Part shown: piece after piece, positions 24,141 through 33,269 of the stretch
Layout of the letters: every line of letters begins with the position of its first letter
Position numbering within the stretch: the first letter of the stretch is position 1
Assembly: GCA_029953675.1 (NCBI GenBank)
Contig: JAMWBK010000003.1
Location: 3,100,001-3,164,000 of the forward strand
Reading direction: 5' to 3'
DNA length: 64,000 nt
Source of the DNA: Rhodosorus marinus CCMP1338
Taxonomy: Eukaryota > Plantae > Rhodophyta
Notes under the pieces: generated by a model
What the model was told of the DNA's origin: nothing
Seen by the model: the letters and a program-made list of their open reading frames with translations, nothing else
The model's database searches: none
Translations under genes and position numbers: made by a program

Positions 24141-25327
24141 TGCCGCCAAATTTCAACACTAAAACCAGAAGCACTTATATTTCCGATCAAAAAATACCTA
24201 TCAAACTACAGAAAACCAGGACTCAACACACCCTAAAGTCACCCCGAAACCTTCTCCTCAAAAAACCATCCAACGCACTACTCAACCAAACTCTTCGCGA
24301 AACCTTCTCTTCGTCGAAAACCCGGAAAGAAATACCTGAGGCTTACTTTCGTTCCCAGTTCTCCTCCAAACCGAACCAAAAAGAAACAGAACAGTATCTT
24401 TACCCTCTTACTCAACCGCCCCAACCCAGCTTGCAACTTCCGATTGTCATGATAAAACAGTCCAAACAGCACTCTCATTGTTCTTCTCTGAAAAACAAAT
24501 TTTCGGCCCTTTTTTGAGCCAACTCTATCGATATCTAGTACACTGACACTATTACAACGTGAATAGAGAGCAACGAATGAAACTTCGCATTCGGAATATT
24601 TTAATGAATATACTTTGAGTTCTCCTCGTTATTTTTCGATGATATTTCTTCTGTCTTATAATATGTTGGATGATTCGAGTTTGGTGGATTTTTTTGGATG
24701 CAGCGATAATCTTATTCTTTAAGTTTTTATCGCTAAGAGTTTCGCACCAATCTTTTCTTTCTTTCGCGTTCGAGAATCGTAAATTTGGTGGCTTTTTCTT
24801 ATAAGAAGACCTTAGTCCTACATTAAGGTTGATAATTCTAAACAAAGGCCAGATGGCCATGCTTGGAATTTTGTTTCAAGCACGTTCGGTACGGATCGGA
24901 TTTTTCCTTTTTCGCGGACCTCGTGTGTGAAAAGCTGTGTCCGTCCCTGATGACTTGGTTGATCCTTCCACAAAAAGAAAGCTTTGGCTTTTGCATACCG
25001 GTCCTGTGGGCGTATGAACTTCGGTTGATAACTTTCGGGAACGCGATTCAGCCGTGAAACAGGCGTGAAAAAGGAGGCAATAGTGTTCGGCTCATGGAAC
25101 GACACTTTTCCTTCAATACCGGGGTTCACATCTCACAGCGTTTCACAGGACTCGAGTTGCGAACTTTGGACCCAATCATTGACAGAGTCATGAACTCGCT
25201 CGGTTCTGATCAGCACTTAAAAATCAGGCGTCGTCCAGAGCTCCTTTCAAAAAAAAGCGCTCCCACCAGAAAGAATTCTTCAGTTCGTTTCGTTAAGCCC
25301 AGGTCAATACTTTCAAATTCGTTGTCT

Positions 25328-26254
25328 TTACAGAATGCCGCAATTAGATATAAGTATACTCTTCTGCGGTTTGTTGGTTGGCGGAGTTGCTTTAACCCCT
25401 TCGATTCTCTTCACAACCTCCATTCCAGCGATGACCCTTCCAAGCGCCACGAACTTTCCGTCCAGATAGCCAGAGTCCTCGCGAGTTCTGATACATAGAA
25501 GACCAATTTCAGCTTCATTGTACACGAAAATGGATAAGGGCTTCACAACTCACGTAATAAAAAACCTCGAGTCCACATCTCCGTCCTTAGTTCTTGCCAT
25601 ACTTAGCGTGCCCTCTACATCGTGTCTACAGTTGTTATGACGGAGGTTCAGGTTCACAATATGTGAGACAAGGACAGGTTGACAGGAAGCGAACTTACTT
25701 GACTTTGTAGTTCTCAGCCGGGAACGAGCTTCCGTAAATCGACTTTCCACTCTTCCCATGACTTCCGGTGACGTCCCCACCTTGCACAGTCAACCCGGAA
25801 ACTACTCTGTAGAACTCGGTACCCCTGTTCACAGTGCAAGTTTTGAGGTCAGATTCAAGACGTACACGGGCTGTACTAATTCGGGTGAAACGACGGTGTT
25901 GGCATACTTGTATCCAAGTCCTTGACTCCCTTCACAAAGTACGGCAAAATTCTTCACAGTCTTTGGCACGGCATCTACGACGTCACCAAGAGTCAGCCAA
26001 CCTCAGAGAGCTGAACAAATCGTCGACTACTGAGTGGCTTTAAGCCTGAATACATGCTTACTTCCATAGAGTCCTAAAACTATTCTTCCAGCGTCCACCC
26101 CGTCTACCGTAATGTCCCTGAAGAATAAAACCTCGCAGTAATCAGACGACTGGGGTACGTTCGAATGCTTGTCGGCGGAAACTCACATGAAGCACTTCTC
26201 CGTTATTTCCCGAGGGTTTTTTTGCTCAACGGGTGAACTCTCATCTGCACGTGC
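25328..26254 (-). CDS. Cyclophilin-type PPIase domain, divergent active site, probably thylakoid-lumen type; 5' end unresolved with an apparent frameshift at 26218-26223
   Basis: Hand-spliced: PREITEKCFMDITVDGVDAGRIVLGLYGNAVPKTVKNF...GYKGTEFYRVVSGLTVQGGDVTG...GKSIYG...MARTKDGDVDSRFFIT...YLDGKFVALGRVIAGMEVV...ISNCGIL*. Confidence 0.88.
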
Positions 26255-26541
26255 CTGAGGGATGAAAAGCAGAGAGAATTCAGGCTCCATGTTTCCTCAT
26301 TTCTCCTTTTCGCGTTGCTTCATGCGGCGGTCCATCGTTTCCTTTCGGAGCTGTTGGAGCCGGGCAGAATCCTGCGGATTATGATTCAGGCAGTGGAGCA
26401 AAAGCGTATTAGAAATATTCAAGCCGTTCAGCTTTGGAATACTTCCGCCACTAAGTACACTGGACGGTGACCCCGGGAGAGTTGTCGAGGAGAATCTGTC
26501 TATTGAACGGGCGAGCTGTCCGCAGTTTGCAAGCTCCTTAC

Positions 26542-29500
26542 CTTGGGTGCTCCGAATCCCAAAATAGCCAACCAGATCCCAGCGAGTGCAATGAAGAACA
26601 ATTCTCGTCTCGTAAGTGCGGGCGAATACGCGAGTTCCTCTCCGTCTTTAGCGGAATCCTCTGCCGACGAGACATAGCTCGCACCCGAGCTTGTAGGAAC
26701 CGCTGAGCTTGCTGGAGGAGCCGAGGAGGTTGTGGAACGCTCTGGAGGTTCAGCAAAAGGAGTTGATTGAGTCTTGGACCGCGTAGGCGGGCTTGGAGAT
26801 CGCGCTGGCGAAGTCGAATAACCCGCTCTCTGGGTCCCGTACTCGCTTGCCGAAGATCCCGAGGCCGTATCCGGTCTCGAGGACCTGTAGCCAGGAGCTG
26901 GGGTTGCGGAAGCAGGCCTTGAGGCCCCATAGCCATCCGCTGATTTAGCAGGGCCTGACCACGCTGCGCTGGAACCCGCACTTGATGGGGCAGAAGTTGC
27001 CGGTGGGGCCGGGTTGCTTGGCCTTTGGGTGGCAGATTCTGTCGACGAGTTTTCGTATGCGCCCCTTGACGTCCCGGAACCCACTGAGGGGATTTCATAC
27101 CCCGCTGGCACTGTGCCGTTACCCGCTGCTGAGGTACTGTATCCCGCTCGCGAATTCCCGTATCCCGCCGTTTGCGTCCCGTACCCCGTTTGCGACGATC
27201 CATAACCAGAACTAGCCGGCGCAGAGCTCGCTGGGGCGGAACCGACTGGCCTAGGAGTCTCCAGTGGTGCGGTGTTCCTGATGAGCCTAATTCGTCAAGC
27301 GAAGCAGATGAAGAATCAGTCGAAACAGGAAGACAAAACGGCGGTTTCAACTGCGGCTTACCATTCCGCTTCTTCACCGTTCACACGTGGGAGAATTCTC
27401 TCCCGAACATCGCGGTGGTACTTGTTGATCCAACCAATTTCTGCTGGGGTCAGCATCTTAACGTCAATCATCTTCCTCTGAAAAGGTGCGTGAGTGAGCC
27501 TCGAGAATCCAAAGTATCTCTTGTCGTTGAATTTGTTTGCGGTGTCCGCCTCCTTCACTATGAGCAAGTTTTCGATCCGGATTCCAAATTTTCCGTCCTC
27601 GTAATACCCAGGTTCGTTGGAAACAATCATTCCAGGGACCAGCCCGGTCGTGTTAGGTCGGGGGGAGATTCCGTGAGGTCCCTCGTGCACGTTCAGACAG
27701 GCTCCCACTCCTACAGCAATGGCGGTCTGTCAGAATTCCAGCCAGTGTCTCACTCAAATTCTATGTAGACGGACTTAAATCGTACCATGTCCGGTTCCAT
27801 GTCTATAGTCTAGACCAACCTCCCATAGTGGCATGCGTGCTAAAGGATCTAGCATGTTCCCTGTTGTTCCCTCTGGGAAGACAGCGTTATCAATGGCAAT
27901 GTGGCCTTTCAAAACCCTAGTAAAGGACTCAACCTCCTGTCTTGTCGGTGTCCCTAAGTGAATAGTCCTAGTGACGTCAGTTGTTCCGTCCGCATACTGA
28001 CCACCGGAATCTAGCAGGAACAGCTGATTCGTGGTGACATCTCCGCAGGTAGCCGGCACCGCTCGATAGTGGATAATTGCTCCGTTCGCGCCAGAGCCCG
28101 CAATCGCTGGAAAGGATTCTCCCAGAAAGTCTTTCTGCTGACTGCGAAAGCGCTTCAACGTTTTCGCAACCTAGTCACACACATCACCAGCCCGACGTAA
28201 AGGTTCAACTCTCAGCGCCTCAACCAGAATGGACATAATTTAAAGACTCAAGTCAGCTCAGCTCCCCCAACTTACCTGCACTTCGGATATGCTCCTTCGT
28301 GAGACGATCTCCTTCTCAAGCCAAGCGAAGAAATTGCACAAAGCAGCGCCGTCCTAGTGCATAACCCAAACAACATCTCGTGAACCCTGAGAGCCGACAT
28401 TCACATGGTTCTCATCGGCAACCTACCTTGTAGTGGGCATTCAGCATTCCCTGGGCTTCTTGGACGTTCTTGACGGCCTTCATGAGAGGAATTGGAGTAA
28501 CCTTCACCACCGCTCGGTCTCTCTGATTCGCCGCAGTATGCATCGCGGCAGACGTAGATGCAGGGTCCAACCAGAATTTCTTTCCACAAGCTGCCAATTT
28601 GACGACTGCGTCCCTCGCGTTCTCATAGCTGTCCGTGCGCACACCAGCTTTCTTCAGATACGACCTCACCGATTCACGTACCTTTTCATTTTCACGACAA
28701 ATCCCAAAGAACTGCTCTTTAGAGTACTGCAGAATACTGAAGTTTTACCTTTCCAAGGACCAGCTTACCTTCTTCTGGTCAACAAAGAGGGTGACTGTGT
28801 CTTTCTGCACAATAACATATGATAAGACGACTGGACAGCACGGGATGTCATCGCCTCGAATGTTCAGTAACCAAGCGACCTTGAAGAAGAATATGGGAAG
28901 TCCAGGAAAGATATGCGTGAGCCCGTGAATCTTGCATTTTCCAAAGTAAGTCGTTGAGACTTTCACGTATGGTTACCTCATCCAACATTGAAACTAACAT
29001 GCAATCCACATCTTCTGTCTTCATCTGCTCACGAATCTTCTCCAGCTTCTCAGCCGCACTTGTTCCCGCGTATTCTATTGGGTGGATCCTGATGGGGGCA
29101 TTTGGATAGCCTGGTCTGCTTCGCCAAATCACATCAATCTGCAGCGCAAGCACGAAAGGTAAAGGAGTGCTTCAGGAATCAGATCGGCAGGACAAGGAGA
29201 CAAAATGTTGAAGTTAAAGCTCACTGGGTTCTCCTCGAGAAAGATTAGTTTCTTATTGGCCTTCTCAAGAGCCTCTCGAAGCGTCCCCGTGTTGCTGATT
29301 GAATGGACGTAGGGGTCTATTCCGACAGAACCTTTGGCTTTCACGTTTTCCGCAAGCCATTCCTCGATTGAAGGTACTCCAGGGGTACCAGCTAGGTGGA
29401 GAACAACGAGGTTTGCGATGATCAGAAAACCATCGTACTTGAAATCGCGGTTCGTTCTCGTCAGACATACCTTTCATTAGTTCCCACGCGGGGCTCAACT

Positions 29501-29974
29501 GCTCCTCGGCCTGAAGAAAGTATCTTCCATCGGTCCACAGCAAAGCCTTCTTCAAAGTAATAACAACAGTTCCGGCACTACCATCGAATCCAGAAACATA
29601 GGTTCGACGGTTGAAACAATCGCTCGCGTACTCGCTGTTGTGCGGATCTGGAGATGGAACTATGAATGCGTCGATCTGCTCACAAGCATGGATACTAGTT
29701 CTTCAGCAAAAAGCTAGAGCATGAACACAAGTATGGCTTCTTTTCTGCTTACCTTTTCGGAAACCATCTGCTGTCGCAGTCTTTTAAGAATGTCCTTCCT
29801 CAAATCTACCTCGCTTGGGCTAACTGCACTCATCTTGATCTTCGTCCCATGTCCTCTGCTTATTCTGCCCTGCCGCGAGCTTGTCAGATGCCATGTCCTG
29901 CCATTGAGAGACCCAATCCGACACCCTCCAGACTTGCGTACCAGACCCGACCCAAGCCCTACAAAAGCGGTCAT
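26542..29974 (-). CDS. Xaa-Pro aminopeptidase (aminopeptidase P, M24B) with transit peptide and long C-terminal extension; true 3' end unresolved
   Basis: MTAFVGLG... presequence, DAFIVPSPDPHNSEY, ALLWTDGRYFLQA, AWLLNIRG.D, SFPAIAGSGANGAIIHY, LLDSGGQYADGTTDVTRT, HGTGHG, HEGP, SNEPGYYEDGKFGIRIEN. The last conserved helix (W|LIRNTAPL) needs the 27287-27361 intron. Confidence 0.92.
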
Positions 29975-30368: not shown

Positions 30369-32157
30369 GACCAATTATTCATTGAATATTGGGGTTTACG
30401 TATCTTTAAGCCACTTTGTCTTTGTTTTGGGTAGGATCCCAAACTGAGTTCGTAGAAGACCTGAAGTAGTGTAGCGCAGAACGCGCCTTTTGAAAATCCA
30501 CGGCATGGGGAGCAAGAGGGCAGAATACTGGTCTAGAACGAGGGCAGTAGTATACTAAAACTAAGGAACGAAAAATCGTAGAATAGGCACGAATAAAGCT
30601 ACAAATTATTAAACAAGCAAGCGGCCTCGCTTGCTATATTTAAGGGCCTAGGACCTGTAGCAGAGGAGTCCCAAAACTGGAGGGACTGGGACGTGCCAGA
30701 TGTCGAATTCTCGTGCGGGTCGTAATAATATTTATTGGAAAAAAAGAAGATCGAAAACGGGACAGTACCCGGAAACTGAAGGTCAAAAATCCAAATATTG
30801 AACATATCCGGTTTGGATACCCTAATATTCCTACCCCTATTCTTATTCGTTCTCCGTTCTCAAATAGTCTATGATTTAATTGAAGCAAACAAACCGAGAT
30901 GAGACGTATTCTGTTGCTCGTCGACCAGAAGCCATTTCGCTTCTTTTTTTTAGATCGTTTTCGACCACGTTGTTCGGCCTGAAAGTCCTCTAGTCAAGAA
31001 CGGTTGTTGGCATACCCAATATTAATGTCCCTTTTCAACATGTTTAATAACCATTTGCACCTGAAAATGATTGGAGACCAATCGTTTTTATGGTTGAGGG
31101 AACCACTTGCGTGTATCCATCATCTGGTACGGAAAGATATTTGACACTCCAAAATGCAGTCGACTATGATGGCTTTTCAGAAAAAATCTCATACACATCC
31201 TACCTAGTTTCCAACCTCGGCCGATACACGATACGCTGAGACACAACAGAAATGGAACCGTCGATGAGCAGATTATATTTTTGAAAAATACGTTCAAGTT
31301 CCTCTTCGGGATGTCCCCGGAAACCCCGTGCGAGTCAATTACGTGCGGGGTTCTAGAATATTTCCAATTTAAGAATTTATTTCTAGTTTATTCTGAACAA
31401 ACTAAAAAAGTCGTATTGCATTCTTGAACAACCGAATAATTACTCCAAGTTATAGACTGCCGCAGAAAACGTTGAGATAAAGATTGGTTTGGTGGCATGA
31501 TTTATCCACATGAATGACAGGGCCGGATGACAAGCCTAGAAGCTTTAACCCGATCAATCAAAAAAAGGAAAAATTGCAATTCCAAGGAGACTACAAGACA
31601 TGTGCGTTCATGATTGGCCGCAAAAACAAGAATACGTGACCAAATAGAAAAGGCTTAAAAATCACGAAAATCAGATACCCAAATTTTGTCCATTCGTAGC
31701 GAGAGATGAGACTACAGGGAATTATCTGTAATTACAAAAGAAAAAAAGAGCAAAGCTTGAGTTTCGTGGTGAAAGATCAGGAATCTGCTTGCTGAATAAT
31801 AAAAGAAAAAAATGAACATCTGGACGCACGAAAAATAAGAGGAAACAAATTGGAATGGTCTGGATTCTCAAGGGATCATTTTTTATTTGAAATATTGTTG
31901 GGTAAAAGTGAGCAGTTGACAGGTGACATCCGTTTGTTACCATCACTTGCAAATATCTCTCTGAGCATAAACCCCCCCCCAAACCCCGCGCTACATATAC
32001 CACGTATATATAGGGATTTCAGCAAAGTTTTGGCTTACAACCGAGGTGGATCGGTCTGAGAGGTCTTGCGAGTGTTGAGAATGATCACTGGAGGTCGTAA
32101 GAGATACTGGAATTAAGTTTTTGGTGGAGGTTAATGAGAATTGGACATTATAGAAGG

Positions 32158-33269
32158 ATGGCATTCCTTGCGCCAAACGCAGTACATACTCAATTTGGGA
32201 AGAGCACAAATGGGCTTGTGCAGAAGAGGTTGGGGGGGAAAAACTGCGTTTTGATGAGGCAGAATCCGTACGGAATCTTCTTCAGGAATTTGACGGACTT
32301 TGCAAAAGGCAGCGCGGTCAAGATGTCGATGCAAGTGGTAGGTGCTAGCTGTCTCCGGCTCAGTTGGGCGTGTGCTCATCACTAGTCTTTGTGTCGGTTT
32401 TTATCGGATCAGGCTGACAAACACGCGGTGTTAGGGAACCCAATGGAAGCTGACTTCGCCTCTCAAGGTCTTGCGACGGCTCTCGTTGGACTAGGTTGTT
32501 TCTGGGGAGCTGAGAGAAAATTCTGGGAGATGAAAGGTGTTTACTCGACTGCGGTTGGATACTCGTAAGCTAGGACTTTATTGTGAGACATGGTTCTCTC
32601 CCCTGCATGTGAAACTCACAGCGTTGTCCCTCTCTATTTTTTTTGCAGGGGTGGTTCTAATGCACAGCCATCGTACAAGGCGGTGTGCTCCGGCACAACT
32701 GGACATGCTGAAGTTGTACGAATCATTTACGACCCCTCAATCGTCAGCTTTGGCGAAATTTTGGATACATTCTGGGACAGTCATGACCCGACTACTGTAA
32801 GTCTCCCGACAAGGAATCTAACACTCCTCATCTCATGTTCCGGAGCCCTTTGTGGACTTACCTAGCGCTTGCTCGGTAATGTCCCTCGACCTAACTTTGC
32901 AGTTGAATCGACAAGGGAACGATGTCGGAAGTCAGTACAGGTCTGTAGTATATTATTCCACTCCAGAAGAGAAGGCTGCTATCGAGGACTCTCGGGATCG
33001 TTTCACCGAAGTACTCCAGGCCAACGGATATGGACCGGTTGTCACGGAAATCAGCGAAATGCCTACGTTTTATTTTGCTGAGGACTACGTAAGTAATTTG
33101 CAGTCAAGATCCGTATGTTCCGAATGAGCAGGGTTAATGACTAGTCGTTGTGAATGCATTCTCCTATCCCCAGCATCAGCAATACTTGCACAAAAACCCT
33201 TGGGGGTACTGCGGACTCGGCGGCACTGGATTGTACCCACTCGTGAAGGAAGCGGCCGCCGCACGCTAA
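32158..33269 (+). CDS. msrA: Peptide methionine sulfoxide reductase A, copy 1, plastid-type presequence
   Basis: GCFWGAE, AVGYS|[22 protein letters not shown]|[21 protein letters not shown]|[13 protein letters not shown]. An alternative ATG lies at 32134. Confidence 0.93.

Follow-up and report, generated by a model that had tools for sequence, protein, structure and literature searches.

A candidate aminopeptidase P–cyclophilin fusion with an internal twin-arginine segment and alternative splice acceptors in Rhodosorus marinus

The feature studied here occupies positions 25328–29974 on the minus strand of the window, i.e., of the whole 64-kb stretch of Rhodosorus marinus CCMP1338 DNA that was analyzed; the genome of this red alga is described in PMC10250338. 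Over the 2.8 kb compared, the GenBank locus L003 (GCA_029953675.1, contig JAMWBK010000003.1) showed 100% identity to the window. An earlier note, made from the DNA sequence, had proposed that an aminopeptidase P is fused here to a cyclophilin. The gene models of the locus were rebuilt by hand from the window sequence (Table 1; all coordinates are window-based). Judged by sequence, the locus is probably one transcription unit and not two genes, and its predicted product comprises a plastid-type presequence, an aminopeptidase P, a disordered linker, a twin-arginine (RR) hydrophobic segment and a lumen-type cyclophilin. The fusion is supported by a junction in the transcript-derived protein P0144, by complementary DNA (cDNA) contigs in which both parts share one RNA, by the protein encoded on cDNA contig L007, and by an open reading frame (ORF) of Cyanidioschyzon merolae. 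It is one of at least three splice forms.

Aminopeptidase P and cyclophilin on one RNA

Two sources of sister-strain sequences were compared with the window: Rhodosorus marinus MMETSP transcript-derived ORFs in the 90% protein cluster, about 92% identical to the window, and five cDNA contigs from two JGI transcriptome samples (two other Rhodosorus strains). In two sister strains, one RNA was found to carry both the extension exon (exon 10) and the spliced cyclophilin. L001 and L002 each run as a single contig from the linker through the proximal junction of the joining intron (see below) into the cyclophilin with all five cyclophilin introns removed; thus, both 'genes' are present on one RNA. 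Every cDNA contig reaching the 5′ side of the cyclophilin extended into exon 10, and an independent cyclophilin 5′ end was seen in none.

In GenBank, the locus is entered as two genes, NDN08_003688, encoding a peptidase of 886 amino acids (aa), and NDN08_003687, encoding a 194-aa cyclophilin with its start at ATG 26290. Taken literally, these models describe two independent genes, i.e., a membrane-tailed peptidase and an untargeted cyclophilin translated from its own mRNA, and joined transcripts would be read-through noise. Besides the models themselves, the conservation of ATG 26290 in three strains, the 'complete' 194-aa cyclophilin ORFs reported by ORF callers (P0137, P0141) and the start of contigs L004 and L005 just 33 nucleotides (nt) upstream of the donor are in line with this explanation. 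However, the gap between the two annotated coding sequences is 30 nt, so that there is no space for a promoter between peptidase and cyclophilin, and the extension of the cDNA contigs into exon 10 also speaks against a separate cyclophilin transcript. Furthermore, C. merolae and L007 have the two parts fused in a single ORF, the cyclophilin relatives bear lumen-type RR signals, and MEPEFSLLFIPQ serves as the pyrimidine tract and CAG of the strong distal acceptor. Altogether, two independent genes appeared very improbable.

The aminopeptidase P part begins with a presequence of 47 residues (MTAFVGLGSG...), of which 44 are conserved between strains. The eight introns separating exons 1–9 are all of the GT-AG type and 73–105 nt long. 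In the fused protein, the Pfam domains Creatinase_N (E = 4e-24), Creatinase_N_2 (3.5e-53), Peptidase_M24 (1e-47) and Peptidase_M24_C (2e-22) were matched in this order. The pita-bread-fold motifs LLDSGGQY, GTTDVTRT, HGTGHGVG, SNEPGYY and GIRIEN were located at residues 452–576 and presumably provide the metal ligands (D, D, H, E, E), as established knowledge of the aminopeptidase P family suggests. The spliced window peptidase was 92% identical to the transcript ORF P0017 and 50–56% identical to plant and algal aminopeptidases; its domain set and metal-ligand motifs are those of eukaryotic aminopeptidase P (MEROPS M24B; human XPNPEP1, plant APP1/APP2).

Without splicing, the peptidase ORF 27358–27708 terminates at EEAEW and a stop codon, and a 75-nt intron had been claimed earlier to restore the last helix. 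This was confirmed: the Peptidase_M24_C match is complete (residues 594–653) only when the intron is removed, and the intron is absent from all sister-strain transcript-derived ORFs, which read EEAEWLTRNTAPLE. The restored EWLIRNTAPL helix is the normal C-terminal end of eukaryotic aminopeptidase P. Whereas the named plant enzymes comprise 600–750 aa and carry no Pro_isomerase domain, the Rhodosorus protein continues for at least 240 residues past this helix. A second in-frame methionine was observed at the start of the mature peptidase, i.e., Met48 in Rhodosorus (29834–29836, MSAVSPSE) and Met47 in the L007 fused protein. EukProt peptides begin at Met48, and alternative initiation there could yield cytosolic and plastid forms.

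The extension encoded by exon 10 turned out as described earlier, with a long open frame, (A/T)GY(G/S)-type units and a strong donor. S, A, P, G and T account for 68% of its residues, eight GY units are present, and in-frame Met codons number zero. Since the frame is open and free of in-frame ATG codons in three Rhodosorus strains, the RR segment is translatable only from the peptidase start codon. No tandem repeats were found in exon 10 at the DNA level. Constraint was estimated between strains according to Nei–Gojobori from the ratio of nonsynonymous to synonymous substitution rates (dN/dS). For the linker, the ratio of 0.33–0.35 at a dS of about 0.4 indicates that it is translated but only weakly constrained. 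In the 32 codons around the RR motif and the hydrophobic core, 10 synonymous and 0 nonsynonymous differences were counted, and the RR-hydrophobic segment is under strong protein-level constraint. Its core reaches a Kyte–Doolittle mean of up to 2.4 across 17 residues. L001 and L002, otherwise near-identical cDNA contigs of one strain, differ at positions 1–140 in the GY-repeat part of the linker, which could reflect allelic variation or an ambiguous assembly of the repeats.

The cyclophilin part contains five GT-AG introns of 66–87 nt, has a continuous frame and matched Pfam Pro_isomerase (PF00160) over its full length (E = 1.8e-35). Its best PDB match was cyclophilin B (E = 9e-46), and the nearest plant structure was that of lumenal PnsL5/CYP20-2 (7wff_j, 7eu3_5). 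Between strains, its dN/dS was 0.2. When it was aligned to cyclophilin B, R55, Q63 and F113 (active-site positions numbered as in cyclophilin A) were found to have retained equivalents, whereas seven positions carry changes (H54Y, F60L, M61T, N102R, Q111R, W121Y and H126F). Owing to these changes, it is uncertain whether the protein is active as an isomerase, and the same applies to several lumenal immunophilins of plants. The frameshift that had been suspected just downstream of the acceptor (26218–26223) is not present, since the frame is continuous through all five introns. In L001 and L002 (positions 922–929), an extra A compared with the A7 run of the window (26223–26217) divides the cyclophilin ORF in that assembly, where JGI called the start MRVHPL.... 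This extra A, seen only in a sister-strain cDNA assembly, is likely an assembly or sequencing error and may underlie the suspected frameshift.

Table 1. Features of the locus in window coordinates (a slash within a sequence marks a splice junction or a predicted cleavage site).
Feature	Position	Strand	Description
Aminopeptidase P, exons 1–9	29974-29753, 29675-29471, 29391-29225, 29138-28977, 28879-28769, 28681-28427, 28353-28276, 28170-27786, 27710-27362	−	ATG 29974
Phase-2 intron, 75 nt	27287-27361	−	GT-AG (GTAAGC...TTAG); removal gives EEAEW/LIRNTAPL, last helix
Exon 10	26542-27286	−	248 codons: peptidase end, ~210-residue S/A/P/G/T-rich linker with GY units, RR-hydrophobic segment
RR-hydrophobic segment TRRELFFIALAGIWLAILGFGAPK	26542-26613	−	Twin-arginine motif and 17-residue hydrophobic core, ending at donor AAG/GTAAGG
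170-nt intron	26372-26541	−	Common to both spliced forms; donor AAG/GTAAGG, proximal acceptor CCGCAG/GA
Alternative segment, 117 nt	26255-26371	−	Exonic with proximal acceptor, intronic with distal acceptor
Cyclophilin, six exons	26254-26187, 26117-26062, 25974-25908, 25824-25699, 25625-25554, 25487-25328 (incl. stop)	−	Starts ARA/DESSPVEQK if joined at 26255
Sequences marking predicted products			LIRNTAPLETPR; GFGAPKAR (fusion); ...REKEK (916-aa proximal form); DESSPVEQK (cleaved cyclophilin); MEPEFS (stand-alone 194-aa)

The joining intron and the segment between its two acceptors

A phase-0 acceptor at 26255 had been predicted to continue the frame as ARA-DESSPVEQK. This acceptor (CTTTTCATCCCTCAG/GC) obtained the top score among all AGs in the 287-nt interval, a score in the range spanned by the other 14 acceptors found at the locus. 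Splicing from donor 26541 to 26255 removes a 287-nt intron, continues in frame as ARADESSPVEQK into the six-exon cyclophilin and gives a product of 1075 aa. The junction GAPK/ARADESS, exactly as predicted, is present in the transcript-derived protein P0144 (1030 aa) of a sister strain.

In the sister-strain transcripts, three treatments of the joining intron were observed, i.e., retention, splicing to a proximal acceptor at 26372 and splicing to the distal acceptor at 26255. That the intron has two acceptors is a new point, not contained in the earlier note. Upon retention (P0017, P0142), the ORF ends ...GAPKVRSLQ..., i.e., …GAPKVRSLQTADSSPVQ, with the stop codon at 26502–26500. Upon proximal splicing, it ends ...GAPK/DSARLQQLRKETMDRRMKQREKEK and a stop codon; this form was found in P0143, P0140 and contigs L001, L002, L004 and L005, and the GenBank model uses the same junction in the wrong frame. 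The short forms possess a single hydrophobic segment near the C-terminus, with 26 (proximal) or 15 (retention) residues after the core (…LGFGA). The nearer acceptors that had been raised as a caveat, 26500 and 26496, do exist as AGs; introns ending there would measure 42 and 46 nt, and they are used by no transcript. The alternative that is used, 26372, had not been listed.

The transcript record also weighs against the fusion form in several respects. The distal junction was seen once, as the predicted peptide P0144 without a nucleotide contig, and this peptide carries a repaired frame further on (CFMEDITIDG). In addition, the proximal junction, which stops the ORF before the cyclophilin, occurs in all four junction-spanning cDNA contigs, in two ORFs and in the GenBank model, and the proximal isoform is the form most often assembled. 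On the other hand, it can be reasoned that the 117-nt difference of P0144 at the joining intron cannot arise from frame repairs. Thus, a check of the joining junction in sister-strain cDNA, as proposed earlier, confirmed the single RNA, with the distal junction in P0144 only and the proximal form in the contigs.

The EukProt/MMETSP peptides P0139 and P0144 (MMETSP0011) have silently repaired frames, which are able to mimic in-frame fusions, and a nucleotide check is needed for such peptides. In the first cyclophilin intron of one sister strain, an alternative donor (GTATGT) was observed 4 nt downstream (L004 214–222 versus L005 214–218; window ~26182–26190). The stretch CFMEDITIDG of P0144 matches the position of this donor in L004 and looks like an ORF-caller frame repair. 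P0139 (1068 aa) was considered as a second in-frame fusion and rejected, since its odd stretch AEGFCPAPTAPKGNDGPPHEATRKGEMRK is a +1-frame reading of proximal-isoform cDNA, i.e., again an ORF-caller repair; we believe ESTScan to be the ORF caller behind peptides of this type.

The 117-nt segment between the two acceptors contains, in this order, a 24-codon basic tail (DSARLQQLRKETMDRRMKQREKEK), TGA (26299–26297), GGAAAC, the same-frame ATG 26290 and the pyrimidine tract of the distal acceptor. Compared with two sister strains, it showed 1–2 differences each (98–99% identity). The surrounding sequence is less alike between strains, the cyclophilin exons being 87–96% identical, the final 300 nt of exon 10 81% and the 3′ untranslated region (UTR) 75%. 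Each of the three differences within the segment is nonsynonymous when read in the ORF frame, which indicates constraint on the nucleotide sequence and not on the encoded protein. The RNA fold predicted across the segment was not unusual (z = −0.75). It thus depends on the acceptor whether a membrane-tailed peptidase or the peptidase–cyclophilin fusion is made, and since the segment is near-invariant between strains, the choice of acceptor is probably regulated. The segment could serve as a regulated splicing element or as a poison segment.

SR-protein genes possess conserved poison exons or alternative 3′ splice sites that insert a stop codon. The 117-nt segment resembles poison exons in being short, in having an in-frame stop and in being conserved at the nucleotide level far above the neighbouring coding exons, without a synonymous/nonsynonymous pattern. 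Moreover, its stop lies upstream of five exon junctions. The proximal and retained forms could thus be unproductive and degraded by nonsense-mediated decay, tuning the fusion mRNA, with the segment acting as a conserved 'poison' element. Unlike in poison exons, however, the stop also yields a plausible tail-anchored peptidase, the 24-residue tail is conserved, and it is unusual for decay targets to be the forms most often assembled, as the short forms are here. Mere decay was therefore rated as unlikely. We know of no described stop-inserting conserved alternative segment in red algae; no literature search was made on this point.

Alternatively, the proximal mRNA might be functional and bicistronic, with ORF1 encoding a tail-anchored peptidase and ORF2 being translated to the cyclophilin by reinitiation 6 nt past the TGA or by TGA readthrough. 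In the proximal cDNAs L001, L002 and L005, the ORF1 stop and the 6-nt spacer are followed on one mature mRNA by a cyclophilin ORF of full length, although in L001 and L002 this ORF is continuous only when the extra A of the A-run is disregarded. L004 shows the same stop, spacer and ATG as L005, but its cyclophilin ORF ends at CFM and a stop via the alternative donor. Stop, spacer and ATG share a reading frame and recur in three strains inside the near-invariant segment, and the proximal isoform dominates the assemblies. However, reinitiation past an ORF of 916 codons is not expected in eukaryotes according to established knowledge, and a reinitiated cyclophilin would be without any targeting signal. 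Readthrough would lengthen the distance from the membrane segment to ARA by 39 residues, and a stop at the corresponding point is absent from both C. merolae and L007. A functional bicistronic mRNA was therefore considered highly doubtful.

Occurrence of the fusion and origin of the RR segment

The closest non-Rhodosorus cyclophilin, P0150 (62% identity), is encoded on the 2.7-kb cDNA contig L007 from another, red-alga-like transcriptome. L007 retains one 68-nt intron, which is in phase 2 and takes the same position as the first cyclophilin intron of Rhodosorus; with this intron removed, the contig encodes a single protein of 868 aa. This protein consists of a presequence (MAFVLAPSCF...), an aminopeptidase P (64% identical), a 12-residue linker, SRREIMASLGGLGLATVLGGLGGSKEASA/SE and the cyclophilin, and its signal reads SRREIMA...GGSKEASA/SE.

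When metagenome contigs were scanned with the cyclophilin subfamily, two hot-spring contigs were obtained, L010 and L011, both with the two domains in an uninterrupted ORF of 1084 aa. The exact-sequence cluster of this ORF includes XP_005536250.1 of Cyanidioschyzon merolae 10D (BAM79964.1, UniProt M1V7P5), an intron-less 1084-aa ORF with both domains that is named 'X-prolyl aminopeptidase, cytosolic aminopeptidase P'. Two-domain proteins, a search for which had been suggested in the earlier note, were thus found in C. merolae, L010, L011 and L007. As in Rhodosorus, the C. merolae protein has an N-terminal presequence, followed by all four aminopeptidase P domains and a hydrophobic segment, and its C-terminal part is a cyclophilin of the (D/G)(S/G)RFFITT...GYLDGK type. 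It differs in having no introns, no alternative splicing, RK in place of RR and a more degenerate cyclophilin. In addition, the position of the spacer differs: the C. merolae hydrophobic segment GRKQVPFQASAIILAVAWSALSLWLPFASVDAAMA stands right behind the peptidase and is followed by about 150 residues before the cyclophilin, whereas in Rhodosorus the linker precedes the segment.

In a HMMER search with the fused protein against 1.84 billion representatives, the architecture was found among the best 150 matches only in the C. merolae cluster. Longer representative matches (P0285, P0286, P0289, P0327 and others) were rejected as further cases, since they are peptidase duplications or N-terminal fusions with no cyclophilin. 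The aminopeptidases of Gracilariopsis and of Logan/ENA contigs that were examined end 10–25 residues past the last helix, and the named plant aminopeptidases in the homologue search were of normal length and had no cyclophilin domain. One JGI fragment was automatically named with both functions. In the literature, no paper was found that combines aminopeptidase P, cyclophilin and Cyanidioschyzon, or that treats both Pfam names as one architecture. The combination, which the earlier note did not recognize as a known architecture, has stood in databases ever since the C. merolae genome became available, under the peptidase name only. As judged from the proteins compared, the fused domain order is conserved in three lineages. 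The fusion thus appears to be rare and common to Cyanidioschyzon, Rhodosorus and L007, and has so far been seen only in red algae.

Stand-alone relatives of the Rhodosorus cyclophilin share DSRFFITT and (Y/W)(L/A)D motifs and carry an RR-hydrophobic-AxA signal directly upstream of the domain. In L008, the RR signal GRRAFLQRVASSVPLAVLLPALAEGA lies behind a transit-like N-terminus, and L012 has the RR signal LSRRDALIQIAATAAALQFSHTSVSA. In L009, HRREFVKTVSTTAALLATSAAVPHSSVA follows a signal peptide whose AFAP motif is of the kind known from algae that have secondary red plastids, and the closest green-algal cyclophilin match has a lumen-type presequence. The RR segment of Rhodosorus is positionally equivalent to the RR signals of the stand-alone relatives and of L007. 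Since the relatives bear such signals, it looks like the cyclophilin's own ancestral lumen-targeting signal, with the stroma-targeting part of the presequence replaced by peptidase and linker. The Rhodosorus cyclophilin is similar to the stand-alone RR cyclophilins and CYP20-2/PnsL5 in its fold, in the RR-hydrophobic-AxA pattern upstream and in the distance of about 20 residues to ITxK(C/V)(F/Y)(M/L)D. In those proteins, however, RR stands behind an N-terminal transit peptide, whereas in Rhodosorus a folded enzyme precedes it and it is reached only after about 870 residues.

Predicted topology and annotation of the locus

Splicing to 26255 generates a pattern of the twin-arginine translocation (Tat) type, TRRELFF-IALAGIWLAILGFGA-PK-ARA/DE (RR, core, basic c-region residue, AxA), and the AxA site is formed only by this splice. 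The earlier claim of an RR-hydrophobic-AxA arrangement directly before the cyclophilin was thus found to hold in frame. The starts MTAFVG (Rhodosorus) and MAFVLAP (L007) resemble the phenylalanine-type plastid transit peptides of red algae. It is tentatively suggested that one transit peptide may serve both a stromal peptidase and a lumenal cyclophilin by way of an internal cleavable Tat signal about 870 residues in, that the 117-nt acceptor switch may couple the two, and that this arrangement could be ancient in red algae (Cyanidiophyceae and Stylonematophyceae). By the likely route, the MTAFVG presequence would import the precursor into the plastid stroma, and the Tat translocase of the thylakoid would take up the internal TRRELFF...PKARA segment in a loop. 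The cyclophilin would cross to the lumen, probably to be released by a cut after ARA, and the peptidase would stay on the stromal side, where the spent signal together with the flexible linker (about 210 residues) would tether it. Proximal splicing or retention would place a stop after the membrane segment and give a tail-anchored peptidase without cyclophilin. The RR segment would then act as cyclophilin signal or anchor in the fusion and as peptidase tail anchor in the short isoforms. Fincher and colleagues, in a 1998 paper listed in the review PMC13186574, dealt with a loop mechanism of the delta-pH (Tat) pathway of thylakoids.

Several properties of the segment are at odds with a textbook Tat substrate. 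Preceded by the whole peptidase and the linker, it begins only at residue 870 of the 1075-aa protein and is not N-terminal, so that the protein may work like a Tat substrate but is not a canonical one. In addition, its core exceeds typical Tat signals in hydrophobicity. Among Tat-signal profiles, NCBIfam gave no match at E ≤ 10 and TAT_signal was not among the Pfam matches at E ≤ 0.01, which is weakly informative since the curated Tat profiles are bacterial. Furthermore, C. merolae has RK instead of RR before its hydrophobic segment, and about 150 residues intervene before the cyclophilin. On account of its internal position, the lack of a Tat profile match, its strong hydrophobicity and the RK of C. 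merolae, the segment may be a stable anchor instead of a cleaved signal.

The same very hydrophobic core, the missing RR in C. merolae and the name 'cytosolic' of the C. merolae entry are also compatible with a real fusion outside the thylakoid, in which the presequence would direct the protein to the mitochondrion or endomembranes and a plain transmembrane anchor would hold the two enzymes on opposite sides. Yet the MTAFVG and MAFVLAP starts presumably fit red-algal transit peptides, and the pattern T/S-RR-x-hydrophobic ... AxA is conserved in Rhodosorus and L007. The stand-alone relatives combine plastid presequences with RR signals, and the nearest plant structure is lumenal. A location outside the thylakoid was thus assigned little probability.

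The thylakoid arrangement suggested above can be compared with known systems. Plastid polyproteins of Euglena and dinoflagellates carry one targeting sequence and several mature proteins that are separated after import; these are tandem copies for one compartment, whereas Rhodosorus would combine two unrelated enzymes on opposite sides of the thylakoid membrane. Aminopeptidase P and cyclophilin are both well-known families, and both act on Xaa-Pro bonds. In the Streptomyces Rieske protein, an internal Tat signal moves only the C-terminal domain across the membrane; this signal is internal as in Rhodosorus, but follows transmembrane helices and is uncleaved (PMC13186574). The two enzyme families, lumenal RR-cyclophilins, bacterial internal Tat signals, plastid polyproteins and stop-containing conserved alternative segments are thus already known. 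New are the recognition of a conserved red-algal fusion through a lumen-type signal, the correction of the split R. marinus annotation and the conserved alternative-acceptor switch as a candidate.

The unusual point is the mode of joining, with a lumen-type RR signal behind a complete enzyme of 650 residues and a long linker, from Cyanidioschyzon to Rhodosorus. If the topology is true, the protein would be a natural test of the loop insertion of signals by thylakoid Tat, of the tolerance of Tat for a large N-terminal passenger and of whether one precursor can supply both sides of the thylakoid membrane. The 117-nt segment with its stop codon would offer a candidate regulated splicing switch in a red alga. 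The C. merolae database entry omits the cyclophilin half in its name and says 'cytosolic'; since C. merolae is amenable to gene targeting, the model is open to direct testing.

As for the annotation, NDN08_003688 contains a 70-nt GT-AG intron (26842–26773) that moves exon 10 into an arginine-rich frame (…SSASE/LNQLLLLNLQ…). This intron was rejected, as it is contradicted by all sister-strain transcript ORFs, and is probably an annotation error. Across the exon 10 region (26538–27377, minus strand), two of the three frames are open over the whole exon (248 and 279 codons). The second open frame is a composition effect, and the gene predictor was probably misled by it. The R. marinus GenBank models of the locus would thus be wrong in dividing one gene in two and in introducing a frame-shifting intron into the extension.

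Rfam gave no match anywhere in the 64-kb window. The JGI contigs list as a gene an ORF of 134–140 aa that lies antisense to the cyclophilin 3′ end and UTR (window 25094–25498, plus strand; L004 561–983, minus strand); no domain was matched in it, and it is probably spurious. In a neighbouring methionine sulfoxide reductase (PMSR) gene (~32134–32300, plus strand), an internal MAFLAPNAV resembles the phenylalanine-type plastid transit-peptide start of the peptidase.

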